64,000 bases of DNA from Schmidtea polychroa (lineage: Eukaryota): positions 104,904,001-104,968,000 of the forward strand of contig CM097886.1 in the NCBI GenBank assembly GCA_044892525.1, in the 5' to 3' direction. A model generated the notes under the pieces. That model saw nothing but the letters and a program-made list of their open reading frames with translations. It had not been told where the DNA came from and did not search any database. Below are positions 1,256 through 30,125 of the stretch, in pieces (within the stretch, counting starts at the first letter, position 1; each line of letters begins with the position of its first letter). Made by a program: the position numbers and the translations under genes.

Positions 1256-1394
1256 TTTATTATTATATTTTAAAATATTATTTTTTCAAGGACAAAATTT
1301 TTTATCAAGTCACACTTTTTTTTTAAATTAAAATTGACAGAGTTCCCGACATTATTGTATGATGGCTAATTTTATAGCCCAATGCAAGACCATT

Positions 1395-2082
1395 NNNNNN
1401 NNNNNNNNNNNNNNNNNNNNNNNNNNNNNNNNNNNNNNNNNNNNNNNNNNNNNNNNNNNNNNNNNNNNNNNNNNNNNNNNNNNNNNNNNNNNNNNNNNNN
1501 NNNNNNNNNNNNNNNNNNNNNNNNNNNNNNNNNNNNNATACATGGCAATGATTTTATTATAAGATAACGCCAATCAAACATTCTTTTCACAATTAATTTC
1601 GACAGTTTTCCTCTCATAATTAGGTGGGATATTAATGATTTTAATAATTAATGATTTTAAACAAATTTAATTATATATAAAAAATTTTTTTCATTTAAAA
1701 AAAAAATATATTAGTTTTTGAAAATTTTAACTCTTCAAATTTAATATAATAATTTAAAAAATTTTTATTAACTATTTAATTTAACACAACAATCAATACA
1801 TACAATACACAAAAGCCTATTAAAAAAAACTCAACACACAAGTATTTACTGCATTCTACACATTAATTTTCGGATTCAATGAATTATTATATCCCACCTT
1901 ATGATGACAGGAAAACTGTCGAAATTAATTGTGAAAAAAATGTTTNNNNNNNNNNNNNNNNNNNNNNNNNNNNNNNNNNNNNNNNNNNNNNNNNNNNNNN
2001 NNNNNNNNNNNNNNNNNNNNNNNNNNNNNNNNNNNNNNNNNNNNNNNNNNNNNNNNNNNNNNNNNNNNNNNNNNNNNNNNNN
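1395..2082. other. N-runs (1395-1537, 1946-2082; also 34785-35027, 59636-59819, 63400-63625)
   Basis: Lengths vary (137-243 nt) and the flanks recur, which suggests a masked repeat rather than scaffold gaps. Confidence 0.6.
1538..1945. mobile_element. Two oppositely oriented fragments of the Penelope-like 3' end, with degenerate hammerhead copies
   Basis: 1538-1690 is the reverse complement of ~54320-54475. 1880-1945 matches 54375-54440 but has CTTATGA instead of CTGATGA. Confidence 0.75.
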
Positions 2083-2852
2083 ACTCCGAGTTTATCCGAC
2101 AAAATATTCTGTCCCCCTATGAGTATTTGTCGTAAGGGTACTGCTCACGCTCAACGCAAGGGTATTGTTTCTGTCTAATACAATTATTCAGAAGAGAAAT
2201 TTTCTCAATTTTATTTACTTTAAAGCGAAATATCGCCGAGAGAAAAAAATTAGGGAAAGTGTAATTTGTACTCTGCACATGATTTTTGCATGAGTCCTAT
2301 TCAAATGAAATATTACAAGTTATTATTGTTCAAACATAGCTAAACGTTAATTTATATTGGCAAATAATAAGTTGGAATTAATGCCATCGAATTTGTATGA
2401 GACTTTGATTTTTGATCAAAATATAATTAATTTTCCTTGGGTCGAATAGAATTTATGTCATAAAAGAAACTAACAAACTTCAAAAATGGTTAGTTTAGAT
2501 AAATGTTAATACATTGTTTACTAAAATAGATGTTCGATCGAGAACTAAACTATGATTCACTTACAATAAGAAATTGGTAAGTAATGTAGATAATAGTTGC
2601 TATGAATTAAAAATAAAGAGAAAGAAGAAGAGATTTAACTTCAATTGAACAAGTTTTTGCACAATACGAAGAATTATGAGAGTAAATTGTTTGCATTTGC
2701 AGTCTTATTGATAAACATTACAGTAGAAAATAGTTTTTCCATTTCACAAACAAAGTAACCAATCAAATTATCGATATTAACTTGGAAAAAATAAAATACT
2801 TCAATTTATAAAAGAAAATTTAAATATTTAAAATTTAACATCAATATACATT

Positions 2853-3992: not shown

Positions 3993-3996
3993 GTGG
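3993..3996 (+). other. Target-site duplication GTGG (second copy 34362-34365)
   Basis: The empty-site paralogue at 961-985 reads ttataGTGGttatgag with a single GTGG. Confidence 0.93.
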
Positions 3997-4535
3997 TGTT
4001 GGCGTATGTGGAGAAGAGAGAAAAATATGCATGCCTTTCCATCACACCTATCAAGCATCATCACTCCGTTATACATTTTCTACACATACTCCAGATGATT
4101 GATCGCATATTCCCACATATGAGCCCATGGTGATGTTCCATGTTGGTGCTGCTCACACGGGTCGGAAAAGGTTAGCAGGTGAGCCCCTGCCTTAGGACTA
4201 CTCCTAACCCTGTCTCGGTTCGGGTCCTACGGTGCCTTAGAAGGTCTTACCCACATACATGCGTATCACTCGGTCTGATCCTGGTCCAAAGGAACAACCT
4301 TCAACCCTAATTACCTTCATTCCGCAGCATTATCTCATCTACTCTAATTGCACAAACAAATGTATGAAAACTTGACAAAACTGAAATCAAACAGAAAATT
4401 TTATTGACACTGAAACGATAAAAATATCATTACCACTAACAGATCAACAGCAGTCAAAAATATATAACATTAGCAGAATTCACAAGGTAATTTACAACTC
4501 GATGAAGAAAAAATCAAGCTCAATTGTACGTCGCG

Positions 4536-5297
4536 TTAGACAAAGTCATCCCCACCTGCAAGCATCTCATCTATGTCGACCGGTAATCGGCTATCTACAA
4601 TATATTTGATGCCCCCGGCCGGAACAATGCGGAAGACTTCTTTCGAGGGGATTGAATGGGTGGACGATATTTCTTGGATTTTTGATTGCGCCGCCGATAA
4701 GGACGCCTCGAGTGCTGTCATCGCATCTCGGCGTTTTTGATTCTTCTCGGCTCGAGTTGGCCGTTTCCGTTTGCGAGGTGGCAGATTATCTCCTACAGCC
4801 GTGGTGACACTAGATGCCACGAGAATTGGAGCCAGAATTGGGTCCGAAGGACCGCCTACCTTTGGCTGATGGCCTGACAACACTGGGGCTGGAATGGGCG
4901 GCAGTTGTGAGCCGTGCCCCTGACAGTTCGAGCTGGAAGATGTAGAAGACTGGTGGTGAAGGGGAAAGACATTCATCCCATCCAGAACGGGAAATTCTCG
5001 CACCCGCTTCGCCAGTTCTGCCTCCGTATATACTTTATGGAGGGCTTCTGATTGTGCTTTGATAGTGAGCCGCTGGCAACGGCTTTCCTCTAGCAGGCTG
5101 TCCCTGCAATGCTCCAATCGGAGAATTTTCTTGCGTTCCTCTTTCATTTGTGGCGGGGAGAACCACGTTCCTTCATAGAGATCAATTCTCTTTTTGAGAG
5201 CCCCGATATATAAGTGAAGTTGGGCGATATCCGCGTTCTTGTCCGCACAAGAAAAACACGGGCGAAGTTCTTTGGCGTTGTTGTACGATGTAGCCAT
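4536..5297 (-). CDS. LTR-encoded 253-aa protein (copy in 3' LTR), unknown function
   Basis: N-terminal CxxC and coiled coil, a Pro/Ser-rich linker and a basic NLS-like PPRKRKR...KRR. A TTTTCTAG acceptor-like site lies directly before the ATG. Confidence 0.65.
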   Translation of the reverse strand: MATSYNNAKELRPCFSCADKNADIAQLHLYIGALKKRIDLYEGTWFSPPQMKEERKKILRLEHCRDSLLEESRCQRLTIKAQSEALHKVYTEAELAKRVREFPVLDGMNVFPLHHQSSTSSSSNCQGHGSQLPPIPAPVLSGHQPKVGGPSDPILAPILVASSVTTAVGDNLPPRKRKRPTRAEKNQKRRDAMTALEASLSAAQSKIQEISSTHSIPSKEVFRIVPAGGIKYIVDSRLPVDIDEMLAGGDDFV

Positions 5298-6483
5298 CTA
5301 GAAAATCAATCATTGTTTATGTTTACTCGAAAAACCTCTATCAGTGCGATAAAAATCAAATTTTGGGGCATGGTTTTGGAGTTTTATCAAACATACCACC
5401 CAACAATGACCCACAGACCTCTTCATCCATCTCTATTCGCAGTCATTCAGTTGCAAGCATTCAAATCTCTTCACCTGATTCGTGTAAATTAAGAAAAGCA
5501 AACGGGGATTTCATGCACAAAATTCTCCCTCTCTAAACCTCGCCCTTTGGATTTGTTTTCGGATGGGACAATTCCCAGGTAAAGCTCGTCTTTTACTTTA
5601 TTCCCTTCAACCTTGTTCCCCTTAGTATATTTTTATTTAAAAATTTGCCGATATCATTATGGCAATCCGTCGATGTAGGCGTACCTAAAATTACAGAGAA
5701 ATAATTCACGGCGACGGAATAGATTATTTATGTTTTTATCTCGTTCAAAATTATGGAATTGATCATGTAATCAGTTGAAAATTCAGCTCTAAATCTACAT
5801 CTAATTAATTCCAATAACGCGTCGAAATCGTCGTCATGGAAAACGTTTACTTGTGATTATGCATTATGACTGAATGTGTAGGTGTGTCATTACTCCTGGT
5901 GGTATCTGTAACTGTATGTTGGCTATCACCGCGAATGATGGTTTATGCTGTTATGAGAAATTATTATATATCGAGTTGTGTAGGGGAAATCCATTCCTTT
6001 ACTTCATCCTATTATCTCGCTGTTCTAGAAAAGTTCATATTATCATGCCGCTATTACATCACCAAAAATCGTGGATTTACTTTTACACTGCCCTATGTAG
6101 ACTTGACTGTGGTGTGCGTGTGTATGTGCATTCTCAAGTCGGAATAATATGGGTTGCGTAATAGATTCCTCAAACAAGCAGCCGTAGACGAATCGGAAAG
6201 TCAGATTAATCAATCTGAGTAGGCGACAAATTAGTAGATTATTGAGTAAGCTCGATGTTATTATCTAATTCTCTTTCACGATATTAATTCAGGCCAATGA
6301 CTATCAGCTTATCCATTTGACATTTCTCCAGAAAACCGACACGTTATCTCTTTCTCTAGGACATTATCCGCTATCTCCTGTCGACTAACTCTACGCTGGC
6401 TAATGTAAATCAACTGATTTCGTTATCGTTGGCAACTATTGCCTGCGAGCTCGAAGTGAGGATTTTGATAATTTCACTGCAAG

Positions 6484-6843
6484 ATGTTTACTTTCCTGTC
6501 AGCGAGAGATTTTTTATCACTGGCATCGGCGATTCAAGGACGACAGTTCCATCGTAAGAGTACATCGATAATGGATGTAGCCGCTAACGTTTTGACGGCA
6601 CAAATCAGACAGAGCCTTGCAAATGCAGTACGTTGCAGAAAAATCGTTGGATTTACTCGCAATCTATGGTCAACACTGTTCTTTCCCAACTACGTCGATC
6701 GAAAGGCTGAATATCATGAAAAATTTTCTCCTAGCTATGTGGATTATTATCGAATCAGTATGAACGTCAATGCCAATCTCGATCTGAATTATCTGCATTC
6801 GAAATTTAAATCATCTCTACAACTATTGGAAATCTCGGTGTGA
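6484..6843 (+). CDS. Antisense LTR ORF, 119 aa, unknown (second copy 32620-32979)
   Basis: ATG-initiated with protein-like composition. No motif recognised. Confidence 0.3.
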   Translation: MFTFLSARDFLSLASAIQGRQFHRKSTSIMDVAANVLTAQIRQSLANAVRCRKIVGFTRNLWSTLFFPNYVDRKAEYHEKFSPSYVDYYRISMNVNANLDLNYLHSKFKSSLQLLEISV

Positions 6844-7607
6844 CTAACTGAACCGATGGTACGCTCTATGGACGATCGCGCTTGATGAAGGAAATTTCAC
6901 TTCCCAACTGGATTTTCCACCTACTGAGTTTCTTCACCCCTCATGACACACCCAAGAAGGCATTCATTGCTGCCACCTTCTTGCACCGTCATGAGGGACC
7001 AATCAACTCGTTTCCATTCAATTAAATCAACAATAAAATAATCAAAATGAATGATGGGTAAATGCATAAATAAAATTTACCCGGCGACCATATCATTTGG
7101 ACTCCAAGTATGATGTTGCTCATCCTACATAATCGAAACCTCATCGTCTCCTTGGTGGATCTCTAATATGACAACTACCACTCTCTGTAAATATCGCATT
7201 CGCATTTCAGCATGTTCGTGATTTCTTATGAAGACCAACCTTCTACTGTGGTGGTTCTCTACCGCAGTACAATTCCAACTCGTCCACATCATACTGGGAG
7301 TTCTCAGATGGTACAGTCGCCGGCACCATGAAGAAAGGCAGCTTTTCATTTAAATAAATTTATTGTATGAAATTGTTTTTATTATATTTATAACCATTAA
7401 CGAAATTAAACTAACAACCATAAATAAAGCAACTGTCGAGACATACCTTGAGTTTCGAAAACTGGAGTTAAATCGGTTGAATTTAAAATTTGTCCTGAAT
7501 AGATTTGTGGTTTGGCCTCTATATATTCCTTCCTCGGTTTGGTTTGGTAGTCTCTGAACTAGTTCGCTGTAGGATAATTTAGTCAAAGGTTCCGAAATCT
7601 GTAAAGT

Positions 7608-7677
7608 CTGTAGAATATTTTTTAAAAGTGGTCATAACGAACCAAAGTTTACCTGTAGAATATTTTTTAAAAGTGGT
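7608..7677. repeat. Two 25-bp direct repeats in the LTR (CTGTAGAATATTTTTTAAAAGTGGT), U3-side enhancer candidate
   Basis: Exact copies at 7608-7632 and 7653-7677, mirrored in the other LTR (+26136). Confidence 0.6.
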
Positions 7678-8456
7678 ACTCTACAGATATTTTCCGTTCC
7701 TTATATATTATTTTTCGTCCAATCAGGACACGACTTGTTTGTATTTTTACTATTTATTATTATTTTTATGTTTTTTATTATAATATATTAGATTTTAATG
7801 ACTTAACTTATTTCTTATTATTATTTTATTTATTTTCTTATTTTTATTATTTTCCTCCTATTTTTCCTGTGGATTTATTGCTACTTTATTGTAATATAAT
7901 TTTTTGTTTTAATTAGACTTAAAGATAGTTTTATTTTTATTTATTTCTTAAATTTCTCGTTTATTTGTTGTCACTTTTTTACTTATTCTATTCTATTTCA
8001 TCTGCTGGGTCCTAAATCGCTTTATTTCTAAATCTTAAGGGGTTTATTGGGTTTTATTTAGTTTGTTTTACTTATTCTTATTCTCTTATTGATATTTTAT
8101 TGTTCCTTTTTGATTTATTAGTGGGAATTTGATGGTACTTTATATTTTTATTTTATTTCGTTTATTTTTCAAGGATTACTTTTCTATTCGCTCCAGTTTT
8201 CGAAACTCCGCGTTTTAGCCCAACAAATCACTCCGGGGCCCGTTAAAATTGCGCCCCGCAATTCACATAATATCATACATTTAAATCATACCTTCTTTCG
8301 GCATAACAACTAATTTCACGGTCAACATTCACACAACCATAAAATTAAAATAACTAAATAATACTTTAATTAAACAGATAAAAGGACAAATATAAGCAAG
8401 CAGTAGCCACTTTAGGTGACCGGATTTATACACACAAAGTTTATGAATGGTCGATG

Positions 8457-9092
8457 TCACATGATCTCAAGGTTCGGAATGTTATTACTGTCTTGGTTGG
8501 TTGAATTCTGGGTCGGATGGCTGGTTGAAGTTGTTATCGTGGGGAGCTGGATTGTAACAGGCATTTGGTCAGGAGATAGATTTTGTTGCATTTGGTCGGG
8601 TGGGTTTGGTTGTTGAAAATGTACTGCTCGTTTATGTTTATTTTTCGGTCGTGGGTTCTTTCTTTCGTGTTTCTCGGATAGTGACTGGTTTCTTCTCCAT
8701 GTTCGATGAATATCATACGCTTTCCAGATGACTAGTGCGCAGATGATAAGGGTTTCACTGATGGTAGCATAGAGTAAGACTTGACTTTCTTTTACTTCCT
8801 TCTTCCCGATGATTTCCTTCAAGGATTGTTGGGTGGTTTGTTCTTGTAAGAGAATTTCGAGCTGTTCGATTTTTTGGGTTTGTAGGTGGAGTTGCATTTG
8901 AAATTTTTTCCAGACGGCTTTGTTCCAGCATTGTTTCGGGATGTTGTTGGAGAGCTTTCTTTCGCTTTTCAGTTTGGTTAACGGGTTTTGCTGTTTCTCG
9001 GGATTCTCCCAGAGTGTTGGGATTGGCTGCCACATGGGTATTCCGTTTATCGCTATCATCATTATTGTCACCAGGGTTGCTCCGAACCACAT
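8457..9092 (-). CDS. Accessory type I membrane protein (signal peptide, coiled ectodomain, TM, tail)
   Basis: MWFGATLVTIMMIAING signal-like N-terminus; hydrophobic VLLYATISETLIICALVIW followed by basic residues. Confidence 0.7.
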   Translation of the reverse strand: MWFGATLVTIMMIAINGIPMWQPIPTLWENPEKQQNPLTKLKSERKLSNNIPKQCWNKAVWKKFQMQLHLQTQKIEQLEILLQEQTTQQSLKEIIGKKEVKESQVLLYATISETLIICALVIWKAYDIHRTWRRNQSLSEKHERKNPRPKNKHKRAVHFQQPNPPDQMQQNLSPDQMPVTIQLPTITTSTSHPTQNSTNQDSNNIPNLEIM

Positions 9093-9147: not shown

Positions 9148-9849
9148 TTATTGCCGGGTTTTCTTTTTACGGGTTTTCTTGGATGTTCTCATCACTCTCG
9201 TTTCTGCTTTTATTACTCGTTTTCTTAATTCGGGTAGTACTTTTAATTGTTTGTCTCTTTCGTCTAACTGTTGCTTTAGGGTTATTATTTTTTCTTTTAG
9301 TGCTTTTATTTCTTGTGTTGCTCTTTCGAGGTTTTTATGGTTCATTATCTGTAGAAAATCATTTTCCCTTTCCCCGTCTTCTTCGTTGTCTATTTCCTGG
9401 TATTTGTTGTTCATTCGTCTCATTATCTCACATTCTTTCTGTTTTTGGTGTAGTTGGAGTTGTAACTCTTTCAGGCTTTCTTGGTGTTTCCGTGCCTCGG
9501 TTTTCCAATAGTCACTAATCACTTCGTCGGCCTTTCGACTGGCCCTCTCCTGCCATAATTCTTCCGCGATCTTTTCCCAATTTCTCCCTCGCTTTCTTTG
9601 CTCGTGAAGCCATTCGTTTTCTTCCTCTACTTCTTTCTTTACTTCTTCTAACAAGATATATTCTCTTTTCAATACTTTAATCATTTTTCGATTATCTCTC
9701 CACCTTTCTACTAATCTTTCGTTTTCCTGTCTCTCTTCTTGTAATTCTTCCTTGATAGTTTTCTTCCTCTCCACTTCATCAACTTCAATTTCTCCCTCTT
9801 CTAACTCGATTATAGATGTTATGATGGGTTGTCCGTTTTCAGTGTTCAT
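9148..9849 (-). CDS. Accessory coiled-coil protein, 233 aa
   Basis: E/K/R/Q-rich heptad pattern and a basic C-terminus. Same strand as the polyprotein. Confidence 0.7.
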   Translation of the reverse strand: MNTENGQPIITSIIELEEGEIEVDEVERKKTIKEELQEERQENERLVERWRDNRKMIKVLKREYILLEEVKKEVEEENEWLHEQRKRGRNWEKIAEELWQERASRKADEVISDYWKTEARKHQESLKELQLQLHQKQKECEIMRRMNNKYQEIDNEEDGERENDFLQIMNHKNLERATQEIKALKEKIITLKQQLDERDKQLKVLPELRKRVIKAETRVMRTSKKTRKKKTRQ

Positions 9850-10023: not shown

Positions 10024-11061
10024 TTATACAAAGGTCTCTTCCTTGCCTACATATCCTTCATCGCTTTCTACTGACATTTGTAATTGGAGTGCGATGGGAT
10101 CAAATGGGATGTAGTACCGGGGAATCTGCGCTCTAAGTTCTTGGACTTCGTCTCTTAGCGCTCTTGACACATTGAGTTCCTCGTCCAATAGGTAGGTTAA
10201 ATACCTAGTTTCGTCATCCCGTACTTCTATCTGTTTTTCTAATTCTTCCGCCTTTTCGCCGTTCTCCCATTTCTTGATCTCCTTTTCGAGGTTCTTGATA
10301 TTTTCATCATACATCTTCCTCTCGTTTTCTAATTTCTTATTCTTACCGGCTAGCACTATATTCCTTTGTTCTAGTGCCCCTTTGTAGCCGTTATTGTCTC
10401 TTTCGAGGTCTGTCACCTTATTTACGAGTTCGACGATTCTACCTGACTGTTGCAGGATCATCTCTTCCATGGCGGTATTCTCTTGTTCCTTTATAGACAA
10501 TTTCATGGCTAGATGCCTTTCAAATTCCATGGCCTTGGTCTGCCAGGTTTGACTTCGTGCCGCTATTTTCCTGAGCCTTCTTAGCTCTTCTCTCTGATCA
10601 AGGTTTTCCTCCCATTTCCCTTGTTCACTTTCGTATTCCAATTTCTGAGGTAATTCTCTCATCTCTGTTTTGATTTCCCGATGTTGTCTTTTCCACTTTC
10701 TGGCTTCTGCCAAGAGTTGACGAGATTTCCTTTCCTCTTTTTGTTTTTCCATCTCTCGTTTTTTATTCTCGTCCGTCAGTCTTTTTCTCGATTCCTGTAC
10801 CAATTGTTTTAAGTAGTGACCGTGAGCTTCCTGTCGCGTATTTTCTAATGCTGCCCACTTGGCGGCTCTCTTACAGGCCTCTGCCTCTGCTCGTAAATTT
10901 TGCACCAACCACTGAAATTGGTGGTTTTCCCATTCCCTTGCTTCTTCAAGGTAGTTTCGTGTCTTATTTGCTAATTGCGCCATCACTTTGGCCCATCTTT
11001 CTCGGTGTACTCCATTGATTTTTATTTCATGGTTTGGGGCTTCCGTTCGTTCTTGTGTCAT
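10024..11061 (-). CDS. Accessory coiled-coil protein, 345 aa
   Basis: Long helical E/K/R-rich ORF on the same strand. Confidence 0.75.
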   Translation of the reverse strand: MTQERTEAPNHEIKINGVHRERWAKVMAQLANKTRNYLEEAREWENHQFQWLVQNLRAEAEACKRAAKWAALENTRQEAHGHYLKQLVQESRKRLTDENKKREMEKQKEERKSRQLLAEARKWKRQHREIKTEMRELPQKLEYESEQGKWEENLDQREELRRLRKIAARSQTWQTKAMEFERHLAMKLSIKEQENTAMEEMILQQSGRIVELVNKVTDLERDNNGYKGALEQRNIVLAGKNKKLENERKMYDENIKNLEKEIKKWENGEKAEELEKQIEVRDDETRYLTYLLDEELNVSRALRDEVQELRAQIPRYYIPFDPIALQLQMSVESDEGYVGKEETFV

Positions 11062-11279: not shown

Positions 11280-12668
11280 CTACTCAGTCCTACTCTTCCC
11301 ATCTCGCCTCACCGCTATTTTTATATATATAGTGTCGTTTCTCGTCATATCCTCTACTTTCCGCTGTAGGATGAAATTCGGTGCTCCGGTTGCTGGTCCT
11401 TCTTCTTCCAATGGCCTTTGATAACATACAAGGTTTCCTGCTGTATGGAAACTCTGTTCATGTATACTTTGATAGTTCATCATTGCGAGATCTATTTTTG
11501 CTTTGAACGGCCATTCTATTAACTCGTCGTATAGCCCTTTGCATATCAAGAAGAATATTGAGAAATGTGTTCCGTGCGCACTCCCGTCCCCATTGGGATA
11601 TGCTTTCATTTTCATCTTATATCCGTTTTTCCATGAGTAGAATGCTGGACTTAATAATGTCGTATCCTTTCCATTTCTCGCTCTCTGCATTTTCTCCTTT
11701 ACTTCCGTTATTTTCCATATGTATGGAGCCGTTGGTATCAATTCATTGAGGTTCATTTCACTTACCTTTTGGTGTAGTTCCTTCACCATTTTGTTGCTAG
11801 TTTCTACTAGATCTTTCTGTATCTTTGTACTTAGTCTTGCCTCTTCGAATGCTTCTTTCTCTTGCAATAATTCTTTTACCAACGTTTTTAGCGAAATTAT
11901 TTCCTTTTCCAAATTTTCGGTTTTCCTTTCATTTTCTTGTAATACCGTTGACCACATTTCTGCGTGTGTTGATACGTTCTCTGCTAGATGTTGGGGTAGT
12001 TCTCCTCGGTGTAGTTGTTTCTGACATCCCCATTTTCCTAACACACACATTATCTTTTTCCTTTCACATTCTTTCAGATGTTGAGCGAGTTTTATTACTC
12101 CGGTTTTATCGCATTTGTTGGGACATTCTCCTCTGAATTCTGCGCACACTTTTTCCTCTTGTACGTTATGATGTTGACTCATTAGTTGCCTCCAGGTGTC
12201 GGTTTCTCCGCAATATTCACATTTTTCTAGCCTTTCTTTGCATCGACTTTGATGTTCTGCTTCTTCACTGGCTTTAATCTCTTCTTGGCAACGTTCGCAG
12301 TGACTGACTTTATACTCACACTTCTCCATATGTTGCCTCACTTCCCATATCACTCCTCGCCAATTACATGGGGTGTTTTTACATCCTAGGTTTGCATTCA
12401 ACATATCTTTTACAGCTGCTTTATCTTCGTTTGTATCTCCCAAACTTGTTATCATTGTTTCTTTGCATACTGGGCACCATTGTGGTCCCTTCTTTATTAT
12501 TTCTTCCACACATCCTTTACACATTCTACATCCGCATCTGGTTTGGTGAGGTTCTTTTAATAATCCTTTGCATATTCCACACTTCACATGGTCATGTATT
12601 CGAATTGTGGTGGATTTTCTGACTTGTTCGACAATTTCTTTGAATTCCTCTCGTTGTCGCTTATCCAT
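11280..12668 (-). CDS. traf-like: Full-length intronless TRAF-family protein (RING - TRAF Zn fingers - coiled coil - MATH/TRAF-C)
   Basis: RING CGICKGLLKEPHQTRCGCRMCKGC...CPVC; Zn fingers C.N..C.W.G...H...C.Y; TRAF-C motifs YIWKI, SPAFYS..GYKM..KAYPNGDG..GTHFSIFF, WPF, FI. Confidence 0.95.
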   Translation of the reverse strand: MDKRQREEFKEIVEQVRKSTTIRIHDHVKCGICKGLLKEPHQTRCGCRMCKGCVEEIIKKGPQWCPVCKETMITSLGDTNEDKAAVKDMLNANLGCKNTPCNWRGVIWEVRQHMEKCEYKVSHCERCQEEIKASEEAEHQSRCKERLEKCEYCGETDTWRQLMSQHHNVQEEKVCAEFRGECPNKCDKTGVIKLAQHLKECERKKIMCVLGKWGCQKQLHRGELPQHLAENVSTHAEMWSTVLQENERKTENLEKEIISLKTLVKELLQEKEAFEEARLSTKIQKDLVETSNKMVKELHQKVSEMNLNELIPTAPYIWKITEVKEKMQRARNGKDTTLLSPAFYSWKNGYKMKMKAYPNGDGSAHGTHFSIFFLICKGLYDELIEWPFKAKIDLAMMNYQSIHEQSFHTAGNLVCYQRPLEEEGPATGAPNFILQRKVEDMTRNDTIYIKIAVRRDGKSRTE

Positions 12669-12756: not shown

Positions 12757-13140
12757 TTATTGACTGGAAGAGTCGGCCTCTTGTCCGCCCTCTTCCCTAC
12801 TGGTTAACCATTCTGACCAGTCTTCTATCTCTTCTCTTTCCATTTCTTCAGCGATTCTCATTAACTCTTCCTCCTGTCCCTGACTGTACCGCAATATTCG
12901 CTCTATTTCCCGCTGCATTTGTTCTATCTTCATTCGCTGATCTTCGATTATTCTTACATAACTGAAGCCTTTATTTAAACTTTCGACTAAGCTTCTTTGT
13001 GCAGCGAGTCCTTGTTCCTGTAAATTCGAAATCACTTGAGTTAACATTGCACATTGCTGCTTCCACATCTCCTCGGTTGTCGTACTGTGGTTTACTTCAT
13101 CGTTTATTCGCTCCATTCTTAATTTATTTACACTTTTCAA
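12757..13140 (-). CDS. Accessory small coiled-coil/acidic protein (first ATG at 13116)
   Basis: 127-aa ORF directly downstream of the polyprotein stop, with heptad pattern and acidic C-terminus. Confidence 0.55.
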   Translation of the reverse strand: MKSVNKLRMERINDEVNHSTTTEEMWKQQCAMLTQVISNLQEQGLAAQRSLVESLNKGFSYVRIIEDQRMKIEQMQREIERILRYSQGQEEELMRIAEEMEREEIEDWSEWLTSREEGGQEADSSSQ

Positions 13141-13284: not shown

Positions 13285-16200
13285 CTATATTTGTGAGTTT
13301 GGAGGGCGCTGAGCATTCCAGGCCTCCACCCACTGTTCCTGCTTGATATTACTTGGTCTCTTTACCTGATGTTGAAAATTTCTGATTCTGGCCATCTCCA
13401 GTTCTCCGCGATGCCGTCTATCTTTGATTATTTTTATGGTTCCCCCCATTATGATTAAAAATGCCCCTGCTATTATTATACCGCTGATCCACATCATCTG
13501 TTTCATGCTTATGATTTCCGCTTTTTCCTTGTTCGTTATTGTTGGTATTGCCTCTGTGCTTTTTAGATTACCACCTTTGTCATTTCCTTTTATCATTCCT
13601 CGTATTCTTGCTATTTCTTCGTTCATGCCTTCCTTTGCCATTTTTTGTATTTTCTCCATCTCTTCTTCTGACACGTAATTATCTTGATATTTCTCACTAG
13701 TTTTCTTGCGCTTTTCTTCCTCTTCTTTCTCATCGTTGCTTTTTCTTTTCTTCCCTCTTTTCCCAGGGTATCGTCGACATTCTCTCGCTGTATCGTTTCT
13801 CCAGATGCATACTGTGTATTCTTTTGGAGGTTGTTGCTGTGTTACATATTGTAGATAGTCTTCACCCGGTCCTAATCTTGAAATGCAGACTTTGTGTTCT
13901 TTTCTTGGCTGGAGTTGCGTTATCACTACCTCACCTCCTTTTCTCAGGTGTACCTCCTTCCCTTTGACTTTAGTTATTCTCTTCCCGTCTCGATTCCGGT
14001 ATGCTTCTTGTATTCTTACTTCCGTTATCGGTTCTGTATCTTCATTTATTAATACTAGTCTCCGATATGCTCTCGACATACATCTTCCTAGTATGCACCT
14101 TTCTTTTAGATCCCATTCTTCTTTTAAATCCCATTGTTGCTCTCGTACTTGCTTCTTCTTTTCTTGCTTTAGTTCCTTCTCCTTGTTATCTTTGTTTTCC
14201 GTTTCCTTGGCTTCTTTTATCGTTCTCATTCCACCGTGGGCTGTTATCATTTCTACCATTGTTAGTATGAGTATCATTACCATCATATTTGTCTCCATTT
14301 CCTTGTTGGTAAAAAGTAGGCATACCCTCTGTTTCCCATTATTCGTCTTTTCCTCTTCCTTTGTTCGGCTTCCCGGTTTATTTTCCTCCTTTTTTATACC
14401 TGAGTCGTTATTCCCTTGATTATTCTCCTCTGATTTCTCTTTCTCTCCATTCCCGTTTCGACCTTGTTCATTATTATCATCGTCTTTATCGTCTTTATCT
14501 CCCCCGCTGTCGTTTGAAATGTCGTCCTCGACATTTATGTCGTTCAATAATCTGCGATATGCTGTTAACACTCTATTTCTTGCTAATTTCGCTTCGAATT
14601 CGAACTCCCTTCTGCCTGTTGCTGCATGTCTCTTTCTATTCCATTCTTTTACTAATTCTCTTAATTGTATTCGACGATGTTTTCCGATTCGCTTTTGTTC
14701 GTTTTGATTTTGCGTAAATTTGAGGTCTTCTCTGTTCAATACGATCATTATGATTTTCGGAGTTCCTCCTTTTGTCAGCGTATTTTTAACCATGGCATTT
14801 TCCCCGTTTTCATAGAACTCATTTATGTTTATTGCATATGTATTACTTTGTGGTATTTTCCATGTTAGCAACAACTTCATGGCTTCTAAGTTCTTCCGTA
14901 TCGTGTTCCATTGGAACTGTGACGTGTTTTTACAGATATTTTCTACCTCAGTTCTTGTAGCATTTTTACGAATGAATCTAATCATTTCTAAGTTTGGTTG
15001 TATTGTTGCCCAATCCATGCTAGAATTTCCTTCGTTTGATATTTCGTCAAGTCTCGAACCTGATTGGTGTAGTATGTGTAAAGTTTTCGGGTGTATATTT
15101 GTTATTGCTGCATACATCATTGCTGTTTCTCCTTGTTCGTTTTTTGCATTTGATTCTTCTCCGAAGTCTCTAAGAATTCTTATGATGGTTATTGCTCTGT
15201 TTTCTTTTGCTGCTAAAATGGCTTGTTGTAATGGTGTTCTTGAATCTTTTGTTGGTAAGGTGAATGCTAGTGGTATGAATGTTTTTATTTTACCTATGTC
15301 TAGATTTGTGGTCTGATCTCTTGCGTAGGTGTGTACTGTTTTGGTTATTTTTGCTAGTATCGCTTCATCGGATAGATCTTGCATTTCTTCAAAGAATACT
15401 TCTTTAGCCTTACGTACTACTATCTCTTGGTCGGAGTTTATTGTCTTTGGTTTACTTGTTGTTGCTATATCGGTTATTGTTTGATCGACTTGTTCCTCAG
15501 ACTCTCTTGCTTTTACTTTCTTCATTTTTATCTTTTTCTTGTTCGAACTGTTAATGCGTTCCTCTGCCGTTAGAACTTGGATAATACTTAGGTAGTTTTC
15601 TCGAATGTTGTTCATAGTTTCCATCATCTGTAAAACACTCACGGTTTCCCAAAACTTTACTTGTACTTTATCGGTAAATTGAGATATGGCTTTTTCGAAG
15701 TTGGTAATTCGTTTTCTGATTAGTTGTTCGTCTTTGTGATTTGAAAACTTTATGCCACGTTGTAGTAGTTGATTTGGGATCTCGAATAGGTGATGTCCCC
15801 TCATCGCTTCTCTCATCAAGGTGTTTTCTCCTTTGGTAAATGTTTCGTTTATATCTACCATGTAATCGTTTTTGATCGGGTTTCTCCACGAAATTAGTAT
15901 TCCAGTAATTGTTATTAATTTCTCTTTGATTGCAGTTAATAACCCGTCATACATGTTTCCTATCTCCCTATTATCCTCGTATGATAATAGATCTACTAAG
16001 ATTATGAAGGCTTCCGTACTTTTCCCTTCGATTGCCTGGTGTAGTGCGTTTTTCTGGTTGTGATCTTGTGTGGTTATCTTTGACCCAGTTTCGAGTAATG
16101 CGATGATAATATCTTTAGCTTTATCCCGATTGGCTGCTATCATTAGTGGGGTGTAACCTTGGTTATTTTCTTGATCCGTCGAAATGTTACAGTCGCGGAA

Positions 16201-19200
16201 TGCTTCAATTGTCTCTAGTATTTGTTCATTATAACCAACCTTTAAAAGTTTGTGTAGTGGTGTATCTCCGTAGTGATCTGTGATTGTGAATAATATGGGC
16301 CATTGACTTTTAACTACCCTGAGCAATGGGTGTGTTCTTTCTCGGTTTGCATAGTTTTCTATCATTGTTAGCAGACCTCCCAATATTTCAAAATCTAATC
16401 TGTCTTTTGCCCATCCGGGCATTTTAGCTTTTACTTCCTTTATGATTTTGTCGGCTTCTGATGGTTGTAACCCCAATCGATTACCTGTTGGTTCGTTTAC
16501 TTGCTGTAACATATTTATTCTGTACGTTTGTGATCTTGTCGTTAATGTACGTCCTTCTGGCTGACTGGTGGCGGTTTTCGGAATTGGCTTACATCGTGCA
16601 ACATTTACGTATATTGGCCTTGTGAAGGGATTGTTCACCAATCGTACTCTTACGTTAGTTTCTCCGACGAATAAAATCTCATACGGACCTTTACCGTTTC
16701 GTTGTAATTTTTTAGTGGTTCCTGGAATTAATTCTGGGGTTTCGATCATCACCCAATCACCTGTTTGAAATGTATGTTGTTTGACGTTTTTCTTTCTATC
16801 GTGCAAGTCTTTGTAACTCTCTTGATAAAATTTTATATTCAGTCCTGCAGTTTCCCAGATTTCCTGCATTCTTTCCTTGAACTTTGTTACGTAATCGTCT
16901 ATTTCCATGTATTGTGATATCGGTGGCTGATACTCCAAATCCATTGGCATATTACATTCTCTACCGTACATCAATTTGAATGGACTCATCTTTGTGGACG
17001 CGTGAATCGACATTCTGTAAGCCATTAAACATAATTTTATATACTCGTCCCAGTCTCGTTGATGACGATCGACATAATTTGATAACATTTGAATCAATGT
17101 TCCATTGAATCTTTCTGTCATACCATTAGTTTGTGGATGATACGGTGATGTTCTTAATTTTGCAATCTTGAAGTAATTGGTTACTTCGCTCATTATTTCA
17201 CTCATGAAATTTGTCCCTTGATCAGTCAGTATCTGTTTCGGCGTTCCATACCGGCAACATATTTCCTCGACTAATATTTTCGCGATTGTTTTTGCTTTCT
17301 GGTCTGCCATAGCGAATGCTTCGGGAAATTTAGTCAGATAGTCCGTGATCACCAATATGTAAATATTCCCTCTATCTGATTCCGGAAGTGGACCGACTAC
17401 GTCCATTGATATCATTGTCATTGGTTCTGCCGGTACTGGCATTGGCTTTAACGGTGCTTTCCATTTCGTTCCCGTGTTTTTTCTGGTCGCGCAAGTTATA
17501 CAGTTCTTTACCCATTCCGTTACGTCTTCGGATAGCGTAGGCCAGAAGTATTTTTGTTTCATCCGTGCCAACGTCTTTTTTGATGACATATGTCCTCCGA
17601 GTCTTCCGTCATGATATTGCGTTAGCAAATCTTTACGTCTATTCTCGGGAATGCACATCAGCCTTTTTTCGCCATCCATTATCAACAACCAATCTTTTTC
17701 TATTATATATCGATGTCGATGTTTATCCATATGCTCTTTCAATTTTTGATCTTTCTCATATACCTCTGCTTTCCCTGTTTTTACATATTCGATTATTTGT
17801 TTCAACTCTACATCCTCTTGTTGGTCTTTCCGTAATTGACAAAAATCTAAATCTTCCGCTATCATCAGACATATTCGTTGCGTTTCGTGATCTACTAGGT
17901 CTGGAAAAATAAATCTGGACATACAATCTGCATTGGCATTTGCTCTTCCCGCTTTGAATTTTATGAACGGTGAATATTCTTGTAACTGCATTGCCCATCG
18001 CATCAACCTACTTGAAGCTTCCTTGTGCTGTCCGAGCCATACTAATGGTTGATGATCCGTTGTGATACATATTTCGTGTCCCCATAACAAATATCGAAAA
18101 TGTTTAATCGCTTGTATAATTGCTAACGCTTCTCTCTCGGTTACGGAATAGTTTTTCTCATGCTTTTTAAACGTTCTACTGTAGTATCCGATCACTCTTT
18201 CTTTTCCTTCCTCGTCGAGTTGTCCCAATATTGCTCCGGCTGCATATCCACTTGCATCTGTCGCTAACAAGAACGGTTTCTTGAAATCAGGATGTACTAG
18301 TATTGGAGCTTCAATTAATTTATCTCGTAGTGTTTCGAATGCTTTTTGCTGTTCTGCACCCCAAATAAATGAGATATCTTTTTTCACCAATTCTTGGATT
18401 GGTTTCGCAATACCTGCATAGTTTTTGATGAATTTACGATAATATCCGCATAATCCGAGAAATTCTTGAACTTGGGTGACAGTTTTTGGTGCTGGACATG
18501 TTTTTATTTTTTCTATGTTTCTGGGATCTGGTTCTTTGCCTTTTGCTGACACTATGTGTCCTAAGAACGTAACTTTTTCTTTTGCCCAATCACATTTGGA
18601 TGGTTTAAGCTTCAATTTCCATTGTCGTAATCGGATGAACACGTTTCTAATGTCTTCCAAATGTTGTTCGAAAGTTGCTGAATATATTAATAAATCATCA
18701 ATATATACCATACATTGCTTGATCCCGTGTGTGACAAAATTCATACATCTCTGAAATGATGCTGGGGCATTGGTCAGTCCAAACGGCATTTTCCTGAATT
18801 GGTATAGATCTCGGCCCAATGTGAATGCTGTTTTCTCTTTGTCTTCCTCCTTGACTTTGATCTGCCAATATCCACTTTTCAGATCTAAAGATGTAAAATA
18901 TGCGGCCCCCTGTAACATAAGTAACATCTCATTGATATCTGGTAACGGGTATGTGTCTCTTTTTGTTACTGCATTTAGTTTCCGATAATCGATACAGAAT
19001 CTCTGAGTACCGTCTTTTTTCTTCACCATGACTACTGGAAATTGCCATGGCGAACAACTTGGTTCGATCACTTGTGCATCTAGCATTTTTTGTACCTCTG
19101 CTTCGGCTATCTCTTTTTGCTTTTCTGCTAGTTTGTATGGTCGTAACGCAATTGGGGTTTCGTCTATTAATGGTATTGCGTGTAATGTAACATCGCATGC

Positions 19201-22200
19201 TCCCAAATCTAGATCCGAAATTGCGAATATATCTTTATATTCTATCAATAATTGTTGAAGTCTTTCCTTTTCTTTTTCCGTTAGCAAGGTGCTATCAATT
19301 ATCCATAATTCGTCAGCTTTCGTTGTTTCGTTGGTGATTTTTGGTAATTCGATGTCTATCATGGGTGTCAATCTACCCAATCTTTCATTTTCATATATGA
19401 TCTTGTCTTCTTCCTCGAAATTTGTGATGTTAATTGGTATTTCCCCTTCTTCATTTATTGTTATTATTTCTCTTGCTAATGGTAATTCTCGTCGTTTTTC
19501 GAATGATTTGCTTGGCTCGAAGATGGCTTCTCCTTCCATTCCTGTATCCACTTTTATTTGACATATCATTTGTGATTTTGCTGGTACAATTATTTTCTCC
19601 GGACATCTAATTATTGCGTTCATCTTGCATATTCTACCCATTTTATCTTTTAGACACATGGTTGTTAAATCGATTACTACTTCCTTGAACAATTCCGGCA
19701 TTAAATCCGTTCCGATTATACATGGTTCACTCAGTTTGGGTATTACTGCTAGATACGTTTCAATTTCATTATCTTGATATCGTAACGTAGTCCACCATCT
19801 TCCTACTACGTCTACGGTTTCTTTACTGCAGGCAATAATATGGATAGTTGTTTGTTCGATGTCTTTCCAACATTTACTGGGTATTTGGTTTATTGCTATT
19901 GCTGATACGTTTGCTCCGGTATCTATCATTGCGCTTGTCTCTTTCCCATTGATTTGGATCATGACTGTTACTGCCGCGCCTCCTGGTGAACTCATTACTG
20001 CTATGGTTCTTACGTCATCAGCTTGATCTACACTTTTCGTTCTTCGGGTTGGCATATAGTTCATTCCTGGTTGACTTGGTAACTGTGGATACATATTTTG
20101 TGTCATGGTCAAAGCTGTTTGTTGTCCAATGATATCTGGTGGTATATAACTTGCGTTGGCTATCCAGGTATTTGTTTTTTCTTTCTCCCAATATGGCGCT
20201 GTTTCTATTGGCTTTTCATTCGGGTTTCTACTTGGATATGGATATTTGTCATTCCCATTGTCGTCATCATCACTATCGCTGCTGTTTGATCGATTCCTAA
20301 ATCTGTCTAAGAATTTTGGTTTGTTCTTCTTTAATTGCGCTCTCGTTGCTTCATCATACATCGTTTTCCGAAATCGTCTGCCAACTTCCTCATCTGTCCC
20401 TTTTATTTTTGTCAGTATTTTGATTAATCGTTTTATTCTGTGTATATCTTTAGAATGACCGTGCAACACCATTGTTTTTGCCAAAAATGGTAGAAAACCT
20501 ACTATCAACTTCCAATTTACTTTCTTTTCTCTCTTATAGATATCAAAACACGCTAACATTTGAGTTAATATTACTCTGACAATCTGAATAATTAAGATGA
20601 TTCCTAATATTCCTGCCATCATTTGACCGAACACTAGAAATCTTCCCCACATTGCTTTCATCATGTTTGACGTGGCTTGTTGGAAATGATCCGGTGATAA
20701 TAATAGTTCATAGTTGGGACTTGATTGGAAATTCGTTCCCCCAGTTATGGTAACCATATTTGATAAAATGGATTCCCGTCTTGCTGGGAATAATACGTTT
20801 AATCGTGCCGTTTCTAAATCCTCTGGTGAGTACATACCAGCCTTTGACACATCAATTGGTTTGAAATCCTGTTCTGTTGCAAGCTCTATTAATCCAAACT
20901 TTTTAGGTTCTTGCACTTCTACTTTTAACGGTAACATTATCCATTTCCCATCGGGTTTTTTATATAATGGCCCGTATGCATTTGAACAGTTAAAGGTGTT
21001 CGGATAAAATCCAATTGGGTTCATAATTCTGGTGACGGGTTGAACGAATCTGTTCCGCCCTTTGTAACTAATTTCTAATTCGTTTGCACATTTCCCTGGT
21101 GGAATTGTGGGTTTTCTTGGCAGTCGTGCAAATGTCTTGGTACATGCATATGTATACATTACCTCTCCCACCATTCTGCCAAAATGTCCATCCGGTAACG
21201 GGAGTGATGGCATTGTGTTATCTGGGTGTGTTATTGCGATGGCTAATTTTGTTTTTAGTATTTCTTTATTCAATGAACAGTCATTTTGTATAAGATCGTA
21301 ATATACTTTTTGCATTGTCGTTTGTCCTCGGTGGAACAAGAAGTCCATCTTATTATTGGCATACAGGTACAATTTTATGTCCTCCGTTGCTACCTTTCCC
21401 ACTGCTCGGTCTATTACTTGCCTTGACATGTAGATACCTGCGTAGTTCGTTCGATATACTATACTGTCACATTTGGTGGTCTCTTTCTCTCTGATAAATC
21501 TCATACCGATATCTGGGTCATCTGTAATTAATGCCGTTGGTGTTTTTTGGGTTGTGAGTCTCTTTTCTTTGGGGGATGGCGGAACTGGTTTCCCATTTCG
21601 CATCCTTACGTTTCCATTCTCTTCATCGTCATCTTCGTTTTCATAAATTTCTCCTTTTACTTCATTGAACAAAGCACTTTTTAACAATTGGAGTCGGCAT
21701 TTTTGGGTGTTGGCTTCATATATTATAGTCGAAATTCCCGTTCTACACACGTTTTCCGTAGCTCTGCATGCTGGGTTGGTTTTCATTTGATAATTATTTG
21801 CGTCGAATTGCGCTTCGTACTCCTTCAACTCCACTGTGTAGGACTCAATTACTACTACCCCGGATATTACCTCCCCTCTGATCGTATATGTGCCTCCGTT
21901 ACAGGATCCATCGGTTGATTTTACTCGTCCGGCTACATAGATACTTTCCGTCTTGATCATTCCGCTTTGTCCGTGTATTGTCACTCCATCCCGGATTCTC
22001 ATTGCTCCGGTTCTAAAAAGCTCTTTGCAGTCTTCTCGTTGTATAGGTACTATTTCTTTATCTAATCCGGGTAGTATGAGAGTTGAATAAGAATATTGTC
22101 CACAATAATATGCCAACACTTTCTTTGATATTACGCATTCTCTAGCTTGTGTTCGGATAAAATCTGATTCTTGATATACGTGATAGGAAACTTTCTTCTT

Positions 22201-25200
22201 TACTATATCTAGTTTATTCGGAGATGCTTGTCTGCATTCCTCTATATCTCTCAGGGAGTATTTTTCTCTTAATACCGAATTGTCACAGTCGTAGATTGTA
22301 AATCCAGCTGCTCCGCTGGTACAGAGCATCCATATCATCATGGTCATCATTAGTGAATTAATCGACGCTTTTCTGCTGGCTGGGTCCTTTAATGGCAATT
22401 CCCATTCTAGCTCGTTTAATAATTTTTTCAACCTGATTTGCATTGATCTCTCTTGCTCGTTTTTTCGTGGTGCTTGTATGAGTCTTTTCCACCCTCCGGC
22501 ATGGATAATATGTGGTTCGATTGTACTTTCAATGATTGTAACTGTCATTTCTACATGATTTGCGAATTGTTTGTTAGGTATTTTTCTCGCTGCTAATCCC
22601 ATCAAATTGTACATTAGATACGTTAACACTACTAAATGATGTTCGTCGTCGTTTGCGTTTAGAGTTAATTGTTCGATTACTCTTCTTGTCTCTTCCCAAT
22701 CGGTTTTAGTGGTTTTTGTCTTTTCTTTGATTAATTTTGGAATTATTCCGGATATTGTATTCCATAGCTGTCTGGCATGCACGCTTGCTACTTTTCGTTG
22801 CCATAACCGTCTCAATTGCGGGTTTGTTATTATTAACATATCTTTTACCAGCTCCCGTATCCATTTTTCACCTCTCTCGATTGTTGGTTGAGCCTCTTTT
22901 AGATCCCACACTATTTTATCCAATTTCTCTAATCTGACTTGTCCTTGTTCTTGTTTCAACTGTTCTCTGGTTTTGAATTCTGGTTTTTCTCCTTGCTTCT
23001 TGGGCCTCCCTTTTGCCCGTTTTTCCATCATTGTTCCAGCTTCTCTTGTCTTTTCGTAATTCGGGTTTCTCTCGTTATCTGTTCTTGGCAATGAGCTATC
23101 GTTGTTTCTCAGCCACTCATTCCATTCGTCTATTATTTTGTCTGTTTGACCTTCCGGTGTTACTCTTGTTGGTCCGTTTTGTTTTTGGAATTGTTCGTCG
23201 GTTTCGGTTTCTGTCGTATTATCGATAATTTCCTCAATACTCAACTTACCCGGTTGTTGATAACTAGTTGACGGCTGGCTTGTTGTCCAAATCTCTGCCC
23301 CTGTCGGCCATCTCACTAGTATTGGCGATCTTTCTCCCGCTCCTTCATCGCTGTCTTCCAATATGATCTCTTCGATTTCTTCAGTTTCGTTCGATTTACT
23401 CGCCGCTTTGTCAGGGCTTGGTGTACTCAAGCTACCTTTCGTAGGTTTATCGGATTTACTTTTCTTTTTGATTGGTTTTCCCAATGTTTCTGCCATTGTC
23501 AATACATTGATCTCCCCTAATCTCATGGGTGTTATTCCGACGTCTGCATTATCATCTAATGATTTTCCGAATAGTTGTAGGTGAAATGGAGTTTCGTAGG
23601 CCAATTTCTTTTTTAACTCTCTGATCTTTGTTGTTGGATGCACATCTATATCCTCGATGCTCTTGTCGGGATATTTGACTCGGATACGATATCTTTCTTG
23701 GGTATCTTGTGCCCATTCTTGATTTCTCCATTTTCTAATAATTTGTTCTAGCTGTTCTGGATACCATTCGTTATACTGTCGGTATTCTTCTATCGCCTTC
23801 GCCATCTCTCTTAGATTGTGGATATTTTCTGATGTCTTTAGTATGATGGTAGCTAATGCTACTACTTGTCGCTTTTGATTTTTTGCTCCCATTGCTAAGA
23901 TATCACCTAATTGTTTGTATCTTTCCTTCTCTTCTCGTTCTCTCGCTTCTTTTGCCTCTTCACCGTCTATGTCGGCGTATTCGCGTTCCTTCTTTCTCAT
24001 CGCATGAATATGCCTGATTTCGGTTTCACTTTCTGACGTAACATCCGTTTCGCTTGCGTTGTCCGATATCGATTCCATTTCGTCCTCTTCGTATTTTGGA
24101 GGTTCATCTTCCTCTTCTGCTGATTCACTTCCTATCTCGCCAATGTCTGTTTCTACGAAAATCCCTTTCCTGATTTCCCATTCTTTGTTTTCCGCATTCC
24201 ACATCCTTTCCCATGGAGTTCGTCTGCAAGATCTGGTACTCAGTTTCTTTATTTTTCCTTGAAGCTCTTTTTCCTTTAGCCATTGTTGATGAATTTCAAT
24301 TATCTCCACTGATTTTTGGTATAGCGTTTTCATCCTGTCTCTTATCTCTTTCTGGTATGTTACATCTCTTGTTCGAAATTCGTCCATGGGCAATATTCTA
24401 ATGATTTGATGATTATCCCACATTCCCATTTCACTTAACGAGGTATCGTCTTCAGCCCGTAGTATTATTTTATCGTACATCATGACTACGTCATCTATCA
24501 TACCATCGCTGCTCTCGCTTCGAACTTTTTCCGTTATTTCTTGGTTTATCTTTGATACTAAATCGTCCACCGTATTCTGGTTGCTCATTTTTATTCGTCG
24601 TTTCTCCTCGTTTGGTAACCATATGGTTATTTCCAATTTCTGCGGTTGCGTTTCTTTTAATCTTCCGTATTTGTGGATCAAATTTATGGTTCTCCAATCA
24701 CTCATTCGGAGTAATTCTGTATCTCGCAGTCGGCTCATTAGTTCATGCATGTCGGGAGTTCGTCTTGTTATGAGCAAATCCCAGTTATCTTCAACTTGTT
24801 CTTGGATTTGTTTGATTAATTTATCTAGATTTCGTCTTAGAGTGCATTGTTTTAGTTGCTCCAACTTCAGCTTGATATTAAAGTCATACTCGGCCTTGGC
24901 GTCTTTAGCCCATTCGTGAATATTTGCTGGTTGCTTCTCTTTATGCAACTTCAATATTTGAGTTTCTCCTGGCCAGATCAATGCATCTATTAGGTGCATG
25001 TCTGGTTTGATCTGTTCTCCTTGATATTGATACAGGTATTCTTTCTTTCTCGAGCTGCCCAAATGTTCTCTTATCCAATCGAAAAGCTCGTCTGTAACTG
25101 CATTTTTTATCCATATTCTCTCGAGTCCTTTACTCGTTCCGATTTTTATTACATAGCGTGTTGTCTCTGCTTGTTTCATTTTTTCCATGTACTTCTTTAT

Positions 25201-30107: not shown

Positions 30108-30125
30108 ATCCCGGCTGAGCCCCCA
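30108..30125 (-). promoter_or_regulatory. Primer-binding site, tRNA-Pro type (TGGGGGCTCAGCCGGGAT)
   Basis: Matches the classical tRNA-Pro PBS TGGGGGCTCGTCCGGGAT at 16/18 positions. Starts 7 nt after the 5' LTR. Confidence 0.85.

Follow-up and report, generated by a model that had tools for sequence, protein, structure and literature searches.

The stretch of DNA analyzed here (the window) comprises 64,000 nucleotides of Schmidtea polychroa (assembly GCA_044892525.1, contig CM097886.1, positions 104,904,001 to 104,968,000) and contains a TRAF gene located between the long terminal repeats (LTRs) of a giant retroelement. Coordinates below are those of the window. The open reading frame (ORF) of the gene runs from ATG to stop over 462 codons, uninterrupted and intronless, an opening that would arise by chance with a probability of roughly 1e-15 given the approximately 7% stop codons expected at the local base composition. 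The gene and the segments of its product are:

11280-12668, minus strand: TRAF accessory gene, 462 aa
12465-12581, minus strand: TRAF RING
11964-12383, minus strand: TRAF zinc-finger region
11748-11975, minus strand: TRAF coiled coil, a 76-residue helix
11304-11723, minus strand: TRAF-C/MATH domain

A C3HC4-type RING was recognized at residues 30-68 of the protein (Pfam zf-C3HC4, E 6e-5, 23.3 bits versus a curated cut-off of 21) with all eight zinc-ligand columns occupied, and a TRAF/meprin MATH domain was recognized at residues 316-453 (TRAF-mep_MATH, E 2e-25; MATH_2, E 1e-24). In a sequence search of the PDB, residues 243-454 matched the TRAF domains of TRAF3 and TRAF2 with E values of about 1e-29, and residues 27-159 matched the RING-plus-zinc-finger constructs of TRAF6 and TRAF5 with E values down to 3e-14. 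AlphaFold2, run on an alignment of 61 homologues, gave a model with a mean predicted local distance difference test score (pLDDT) of 92.9. In the model, the RING and zinc-finger modules extend to about residue 230, followed by a single helix at residues 232-307 with pLDDT above 90, which aligns with the coiled coil of a TRAF3 construct (8zuk/1flk), and a beta-sandwich at residues 316-455. The top matches of the model in Foldseek are the TRAF domains of TRAF2 and TRAF3, with template modeling scores (TM-scores) of 0.82-0.86 when normalized by target length. Together, the sequence matches and the predicted structure identify the product as a full TRAF, with a RING followed by a region resembling the zinc fingers of TRAFs, then a coiled coil, and a TRAF-C/MATH domain at the end.

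An earlier reading made from the letters of the window (the sequence-only reading) had described a complete, intronless, and intact TRAF between LTRs, and this description was borne out, as were the RING, the coiled coil, and the TRAF-C domain that it had named. The TRAF zinc fingers that it listed were recovered through the TRAF6/TRAF5 matches but not through the Pfam zf-TRAF model, which did not match the protein even at E<=1; in comparison with the homologues, however, the Cys/His columns of the finger region (residues 96-235) show either no variation or conservation of at least 90%, and they were modeled at pLDDT 93-97. The same reading had pointed to the replacement of the RING His ligand by Cys. 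The replacement is real, with Cys47 as the fourth RING ligand where a fish TRAF has His, but Cys is found at this position in every aligned planarian TRAF. Judging from the alignment, Cys at this position is a trait of the planarian lineage and is uninformative on the element. Among 60 homologues, 53 columns are at least 90% conserved, and the window TRAF keeps 50 of them, including all zinc ligands.

The gene is enclosed in a single insertion with the following boundaries:

3997-34361, minus strand: whole LTR retroelement, 30,365 bp, a Burro-like giant of Ty3/Gypsy type with every listed reading frame intact
30133-34361, minus strand: 5' LTR (in the element orientation), 4,229 bp
3997-8225, minus strand: 3' LTR, 4,229 bp
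3993-3996 and 34362-34365: left and right copies of the target-site duplication GTGG
973-976: paralogous uninterrupted ("empty") site, in which the left flank, a single GTGG, and the right flank are joined and the element is absent
30107-30125, minus strand: primer-binding-site-like stretch read from the sequence, starting with TGG, 7 nt inside the edge of the 5' LTR

Self-comparison of the window showed that the LTRs are direct repeats of 4,229 bp with one mismatch between the copies. They have termini of the TG..CA type (TGTTGG..CCAACA) and are flanked by the 4-bp duplication GTGG. With one difference between LTRs of this length, the insertion is very recent. The sequence into which the element inserted occurs at least three times in the window (972-2487, 34361-35430, and 63626-64000), which leaves an uninterrupted copy of the target site for comparison; runs of N are present in these repeats. 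The two flanks are directly joined at 973-976, and the interval 3997-34361 therefore arrived as one insertion. Both LTRs contain an identical ORF of 253 aa (4536-5297 and 30672-31433, minus strand), for which no family match was found and whose GC content at third codon positions (GC3) of.51 is unlike that of the internal genes. No tRNA gene was found in the window, so the primer-binding-site-like stretch has no match there, and no Rfam family was found in the window either. A 73-bp unit is repeated three times in tandem (28377-28593, 94% matches) in the leader that separates the 5' LTR from gag.

The long internal ORFs of the retroelement are all on the minus strand and consist of a leader ORF, a giant ORF, and five 3' ORFs. 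In addition to the TRAF gene, the interior contains:

29191-29670, minus strand: leader ORF, 159 aa, with an IAP-type RING at the C-terminus (Pfam zf-C3HC4_3, E 3e-8; RING domains of XIAP/cIAP, E about 1e-8)
13285-27159, minus strand: polyprotein ORF, 4,624 aa, uninterrupted by stops or frameshifts
26725-27006, minus strand: Gag (Pfam Retrotrans_gag, residues 52-145)
26254-26406, minus strand: three CCHC knuckles (residues 252, 271, and 289)
20533-22356, minus strand: fusion glycoprotein, in frame between Gag and protease (Pfam Monjiviricetes_fusion, E 3e-72, about residues 1602-2209)
19690-19965, minus strand: protease (Pfam)
18550-19026, minus strand: reverse transcriptase (Pfam)
17974-18363, minus strand: RNase H (Pfam)
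17134-17652, minus strand: integrase (Pfam)
15073-16215, minus strand: ankyrin repeats (Pfam)
12757-13140, first ATG at 13116, minus strand: accessory ORF, 127 aa, charged and helical-looking, no family match
10024-11061, minus strand: accessory ORF, 345 aa, coiled-coil-like, no family match
9148-9849, minus strand: accessory ORF, 233 aa, highly charged, no family match
8457-9092, minus strand: accessory ORF, 211 aa, with one hydrophobic stretch, no family match

The pol domains are arranged in the Ty3/Gypsy order of protease (PR), reverse transcriptase (RT), RNase H (RH), and integrase (IN), with the ankyrin repeats after them. The fusion glycoprotein is of the mononegavirus type (class III) and has a transmembrane-like stretch as a membrane anchor at polyprotein residues 2172-2207. 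A second hydrophobic stretch resembling a membrane anchor is present past the ankyrin repeats, at about residues 4554-4580 (13420-13500, minus strand). The polyprotein, the TRAF, and the four other small 3' ORFs follow one another on one strand with spacers of 55-218 nt, and the TRAF is one of six small extra ORFs on this strand. The leader ORF, upstream of gag, is predicted to be a second ubiquitin-ligase-like accessory gene. No MATH domain was found in the 4,624-aa polyprotein with Pfam. One gap-rich match of 26% identity (E 0.018 for a single comparison) was considered as a MATH remnant in the polyprotein and, having no Pfam support, was rejected. A BCL2-like candidate stretch upstream of the glycoprotein gave no match in the PDB, and its single-sequence model had a pLDDT of 42 and was unusable.

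This anatomy, as read from sequence, matches that of the Burro type of giant Gypsy-like elements. Planarian giant retroelements with TRAF modules were reportedly recorded in Repbase in 2007 and by Grohme et al. in 2018. The presence of a TRAF in a retroelement, which the sequence-only reading had treated as a new oddity, is thus already known for this group and has been in print since 2007-2019. The Burro elements of Schmidtea mediterranea (Burro1, which is GYPSM1, and Burro-2 to -4) are Gypsy-like and over 30 kb (PMC6431247). ORF1 of Burro1 has 4,873 aa, with Gag and three knuckles at its start, an in-frame env-like mononegavirus fusion glycoprotein between gag and pol, and ankyrin repeats, and it contains RING (AIR1), Smc (coiled-coil), and MATH_TRAF_C motifs; similar motifs are found in Burro-2 to -4 (PMC6431247). 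The MATH_TRAF_C domain of a Burro-like element in Dugesia (Girardia) tigrina belongs to an accessory ORF (PMC6431247). In planarian tissues, Burro elements are present in abundance, give rise to transcripts, and are controlled by PIWI (PMC8532177).

In architecture, the window element and Burro1-4 are alike in a size above 30 kb, LTRs of several kilobases, a giant ORF starting from Gag and three CCHC knuckles, an in-frame fusion glycoprotein, the PR-RT-RH-IN order, ankyrin repeats, a TRAF-derived module, and accessory ORFs. The 4,873-aa ORF1 of Burro1 includes the motifs RING, Smc, and MATH_TRAF_C, whereas the window element has a 4,624-aa ORF1 lacking MATH and a whole, separate TRAF 3' of pol. 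The Burro motif set also includes BIR, BCL2-like, dUTPase, and SUMO-like motifs, none of which was detected in the window element with Pfam. The D. tigrina element resembles the window element in placing MATH_TRAF_C on a separate accessory ORF outside the polyprotein. In that element, however, the accessory ORF is upstream of ORF1, which has 5,140 aa, and there are two CCHC knuckles, whereas the window element has its TRAF downstream of pol, three knuckles, and an upstream ORF that encodes the IAP-type RING protein. Having a full-length TRAF that stands alone 3' of pol and an IAP-type RING ORF upstream is at most a variant of a known arrangement. In the literature searched, we found no functional work on the Burro TRAF modules. 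Complex retroviruses and LTR elements that capture host genes likewise have host-derived ORFs on the same strand outside gag-pol, probably expressed from processed RNA. The six extra ORFs and the in-frame extra domains of the window element are far above what is known in retroviruses, and its capture of the TRAF would be old and stable, in contrast to replication-defective acute transduction.

A HMMER search of 1.84 billion cluster representatives with the TRAF returned 6,326 hits. The closest identity was 38% over the full length (protein P0002) and 41% over the N-terminal half, and nothing exceeded 41%. The nearest named relatives are triclad TRAFs of Dendrocoelum lacteum and Dugesia japonica, and a neighbor-joining tree, computed without support values, placed the window TRAF beside P0002 within the planarian group. 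Since the nearest relatives are planarian, a host origin is plausible. For the element itself, these triclad relatives and the AT-rich sequence on either side of it point indirectly to a planarian host. The cellular planarian TRAFs (D. lacteum TRAF-2/-4/-5, D. japonica TRAF-2-like A, P0002, P0011, and P0014) have the same domain order, fourth-ligand Cys, and zinc-ligand columns as the window TRAF. They are its nearest neighbors in the tree, yet they are only 27-41% identical to it, and the window TRAF lies in an LTR element and has A-rich codon use. An exact look-up of P0002 found no contig; no relatives of the TRAF were found in the metagenome contigs scanned or in the IMG/VR viral contigs scanned; and a word-indexed protein search returned nothing with the TRAF itself and two proteins only with a profile of planarian TRAFs.

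Three UniParc proteins, P0011, P0014, and P0107 (UPI0006026E5E, UPI000600F2C5, and UPI00060F1ED0), have in common with the window TRAF a pre-RING N-terminal leader and the RING-finger half, at 39-41% identity; MATH is missing from the C-terminal part of each. Decay or mis-modeling of element-borne TRAFs could account for them.

The base composition of the TRAF gene (A.42, C.16, G.24, T.19; third-position A.48; GC3.36) follows that of the polyprotein, whose third-position A is.46 and whose GC3 is equal to that of the TRAF. The other ORFs in the window have GC3 values of.13-.19, with one at.35, and their third-position A is roughly equal to T, unlike that of the TRAF. Neither a poly(A) tract nor a private target duplication was found around the TRAF ORF. 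The element-like composition, the absence of both marks of retrocopying, and the retention of the conserved columns despite the divergence of the protein argue against a recent mRNA capture. Judged by these sequence features, the TRAF is not a recent passenger but a long-established accessory gene, planarian in origin and assimilated in composition to the element; the features are consistent with a planarian TRAF having been captured long ago and then maintained under constraint as the element lineage evolved. Of the retro-captured host mRNA proposed by the sequence-only reading, the host source is thus plausible, whereas the composition, a best identity of 38-41%, and the missing poly(A) tract and duplication speak against a recent capture.

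In five of the six accessory ORFs, one of them the TRAF, the first ATG has a YAG 1-8 nt upstream, against a background of 21% of the ATGs in the element. The pattern suggests that these YAGs may serve as acceptors, either of 3' splicing of the kind known from complex retroviruses or of trans-splicing like the spliced-leader processing of flatworms. The other signaling-type parts of the element are coherent with the TRAF: the leader ORF with its IAP-type RING and the ankyrin repeats at the end of the polyprotein both point to the same signaling circuitry, as far as domain identity can indicate it. Taken together, we consider it probable that the giant LTR retroelement, of Burro type, has the TRAF ORF as a resident accessory gene, which was taken long ago from a planarian TRAF and kept intact, and which would act, when expressed from processed RNA, as a mimic of host TRAFs that redirects TNFR/TLR-type signaling.

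According to this proposal, a planarian TRAF would have been captured long ago by an endogenous-retrovirus-like element and would have evolved as part of it since. Like the other small ORFs, the TRAF would most likely be expressed from a processed sub-genomic RNA, either cis- or trans-spliced, and its product would most likely mimic host TRAF adaptors or E3 ligases by trimerizing through the coiled coil, docking through TRAF-C, and acting through the RING and zinc fingers. Wherever the element is expressed, TNFR/TLR-type ubiquitin signaling of the cell (NF-kB, JNK/p38, and cell death) would be redirected, with the TRAF working alongside the IAP-type RING protein and the ankyrin repeats of the element. 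Its role is probably one of tampering with this signaling, by mimicking or competing with host TRAFs. How the gene is expressed and what the protein binds are inferred, and the signaling may be either activated or blocked.

Other explanations were weighed against this one. The TRAF could be a host mRNA copied into this one element copy by template switching or as a nested retrocopy, neutral and not yet decayed for want of time. The intronless ORF would be expected of such a passenger, the insertion is young enough that intactness alone is uninformative, and a single copy of the element was examined. Nevertheless, we regard this account as very improbable, because the composition of the gene is that of the polyprotein and not of the surrounding genome, neither a poly(A) tract nor a target duplication stands beside the ORF, and 1.84 billion representatives, planarian TRAFs included, hold nothing closer than 38-41% identity; moreover, the spacing of the TRAF and its upstream YAG resemble those of the neighboring accessory ORFs, and TRAF modules are on record for several families of Burro and for one further genus (PMC6431247). 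The TRAF genes of planarians are numerous (PMC6109357), and their genomes are rich in LTR elements, so that an ordinary chromosomal TRAF gene might have come to be flanked by two independent LTR-bearing insertions. The chance of this is close to nil: the LTRs differ by one base and have one 4-bp duplication between them, the Gag-to-integrase region and the small ORFs, alike in their A-rich composition, fill the interval on one strand, and the paralogous site with directly joined flanks identifies the 30.4 kb as a single insertion, a comparison that excludes two separate ones.

A third account accepts the TRAF as a gene of the element and differs in what the protein does. The TRAF-like protein would serve the element's own replication cycle, for example in ubiquitin-dependent handling of Gag or the glycoprotein or in the removal of restriction factors, rather than in TNFR/TLR-type rewiring. 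Every zinc ligand of the RING is kept, the leader contributes another RING protein, residues at MATH 399-429 that are conserved in receptor-binding TRAFs are changed in a manner consistent with new partners, and the equivalent module in Burro1 belongs to a Gag-proximal polyprotein (PMC6431247). On the other hand, the nearest matches in both sequence and structure are the receptor-docking TRAF domains of TRAF2 and TRAF3, and an IAP-type RING together with ankyrin repeats is typical of mimicry of death and NF-kB pathways. A role in the replication cycle instead of in signaling appears distinctly unlikely, although less so than the two preceding accounts.

Several observations weigh against the proposal of a long-resident host-TRAF mimic. 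The near-identity of the LTRs makes the intact TRAF frame by itself silent on selection after insertion. The exact TRAF protein was absent from the gene-position collection, and no second genomic copy, transcript, or protein was found. The recurrence of TRAFs across the Burro family comes from one review, and metagenome relatives of the element, which are 49-54% identical in the RT-IN region and have the glycoprotein in frame, lack a TRAF. The YAG pattern was noticed post hoc, and a search of the leader for a convincing splice donor found none. Finally, residues conserved in other TRAFs are changed at MATH position 355 and within 399-429 in alignments that include TRAF3. Canonical binding of receptor peptides is therefore not to be assumed, and the partner specificity of the protein may differ.

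None of the 85 retroelement loci fetched with the RT-IN region carries a TRAF. The layout with an in-frame glycoprotein is also found in about 16 metagenome polyproteins at about 50% RT-IN identity. Loci L001, L002, L005, and L008 have one or two ORFs for RNase_T-type (DEDD) exonucleases 3' of pol, which the window element lacks, and the exonuclease appears to be a conserved accessory gene of the clade of metagenome relatives. On this comparison of gene content, the TRAF seems to belong to the planarian branch of the element lineage. In two contigs from ENA sample ERZ25039515 (L002:1-6000 and L003:17000-24600), a eukaryote-type retroelement is joined to bacterial genes (MacB/ABC transporter, TetR, luciferase-like, and Mnh antiporter); these contigs are probably chimeric assemblies.

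TRAFs are also encoded by viruses. The sequence-only reading had held that viruses usually bind TRAFs rather than encode them, to which the megalocytivirus protein ISKNV ORF111L is an exception: this viral TRAF is reported to bind TRADD and to trigger caspase-8-dependent death (PMC3352826), a precedent that agrees with the action on death signaling proposed for the window TRAF. Compared by description only, ORF111L is like the window TRAF in combining a RING, a coiled coil, and a MATH domain and in being related to the TRAFs of its host group (PMC3352826). It differs in belonging to a large DNA virus of fish and in having 296 aa with no zinc-finger region reported, whereas the window TRAF belongs to a flatworm retroelement and has 462 aa with a full zinc-finger array. 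Two TRAF homologues that are 27-28% identical to the window TRAF were observed on gene-dense metagenome contigs (L006:2195-3586 and L007:7659-9065). One of them adjoins a BIR-plus-RING IAP and a dynamin-like GTPase, and the other adjoins a thymidylate kinase and a protein kinase. These contigs look like, and possibly are, large DNA viruses encoding TRAFs.

To the right of the retroelement, a Maverick/Polinton-like element occupies 35934-51102, with inverted repeats at 35934-36254 and 50771-51102 (91% identical) and four ORFs between them:

36878-38170: double-jelly-roll capsid protein
38188-39573: rve integrase with a PLA2-like domain
39570-40406: A32-type packaging ATPase
45942-50735: protein-primed DNA polymerase B, 1,597 aa

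A second ORF for a protein-primed DNA polymerase B (56151-58955, 934 aa, with an Endonuclease VII motif) is located outside these repeats and may be a fragment of another Maverick-like element.

The copy described here leaves the knowledge of the Burro class unchanged. Few mobile elements or viruses carry a whole adaptor of innate-immunity and cell-death signaling, and an apparently intact copy, in which a full-length TRAF stands alone and is accompanied by an IAP-type RING protein and an in-frame viral fusion glycoprotein, provides a useful reference anatomy. It can be used to ask how such elements express strings of extra genes and what share of the planarian TRAF expansion is element-borne. 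The "TRAF expansion" of planarians has been counted as roughly 100 MATH/TRAF transcripts (PMC6109357). That Burro-type elements are the motor of this family, with a sizeable share of these transcripts being element-encoded or element-descended, is a speculative idea that we consider unlikely on balance; the truncated UniParc proteins P0011, P0014, and P0107 may be candidates for such element-derived TRAFs. If it were true, an endogenous-retrovirus-like element would repeatedly inject immune-adaptor genes into the repertoire of its host.

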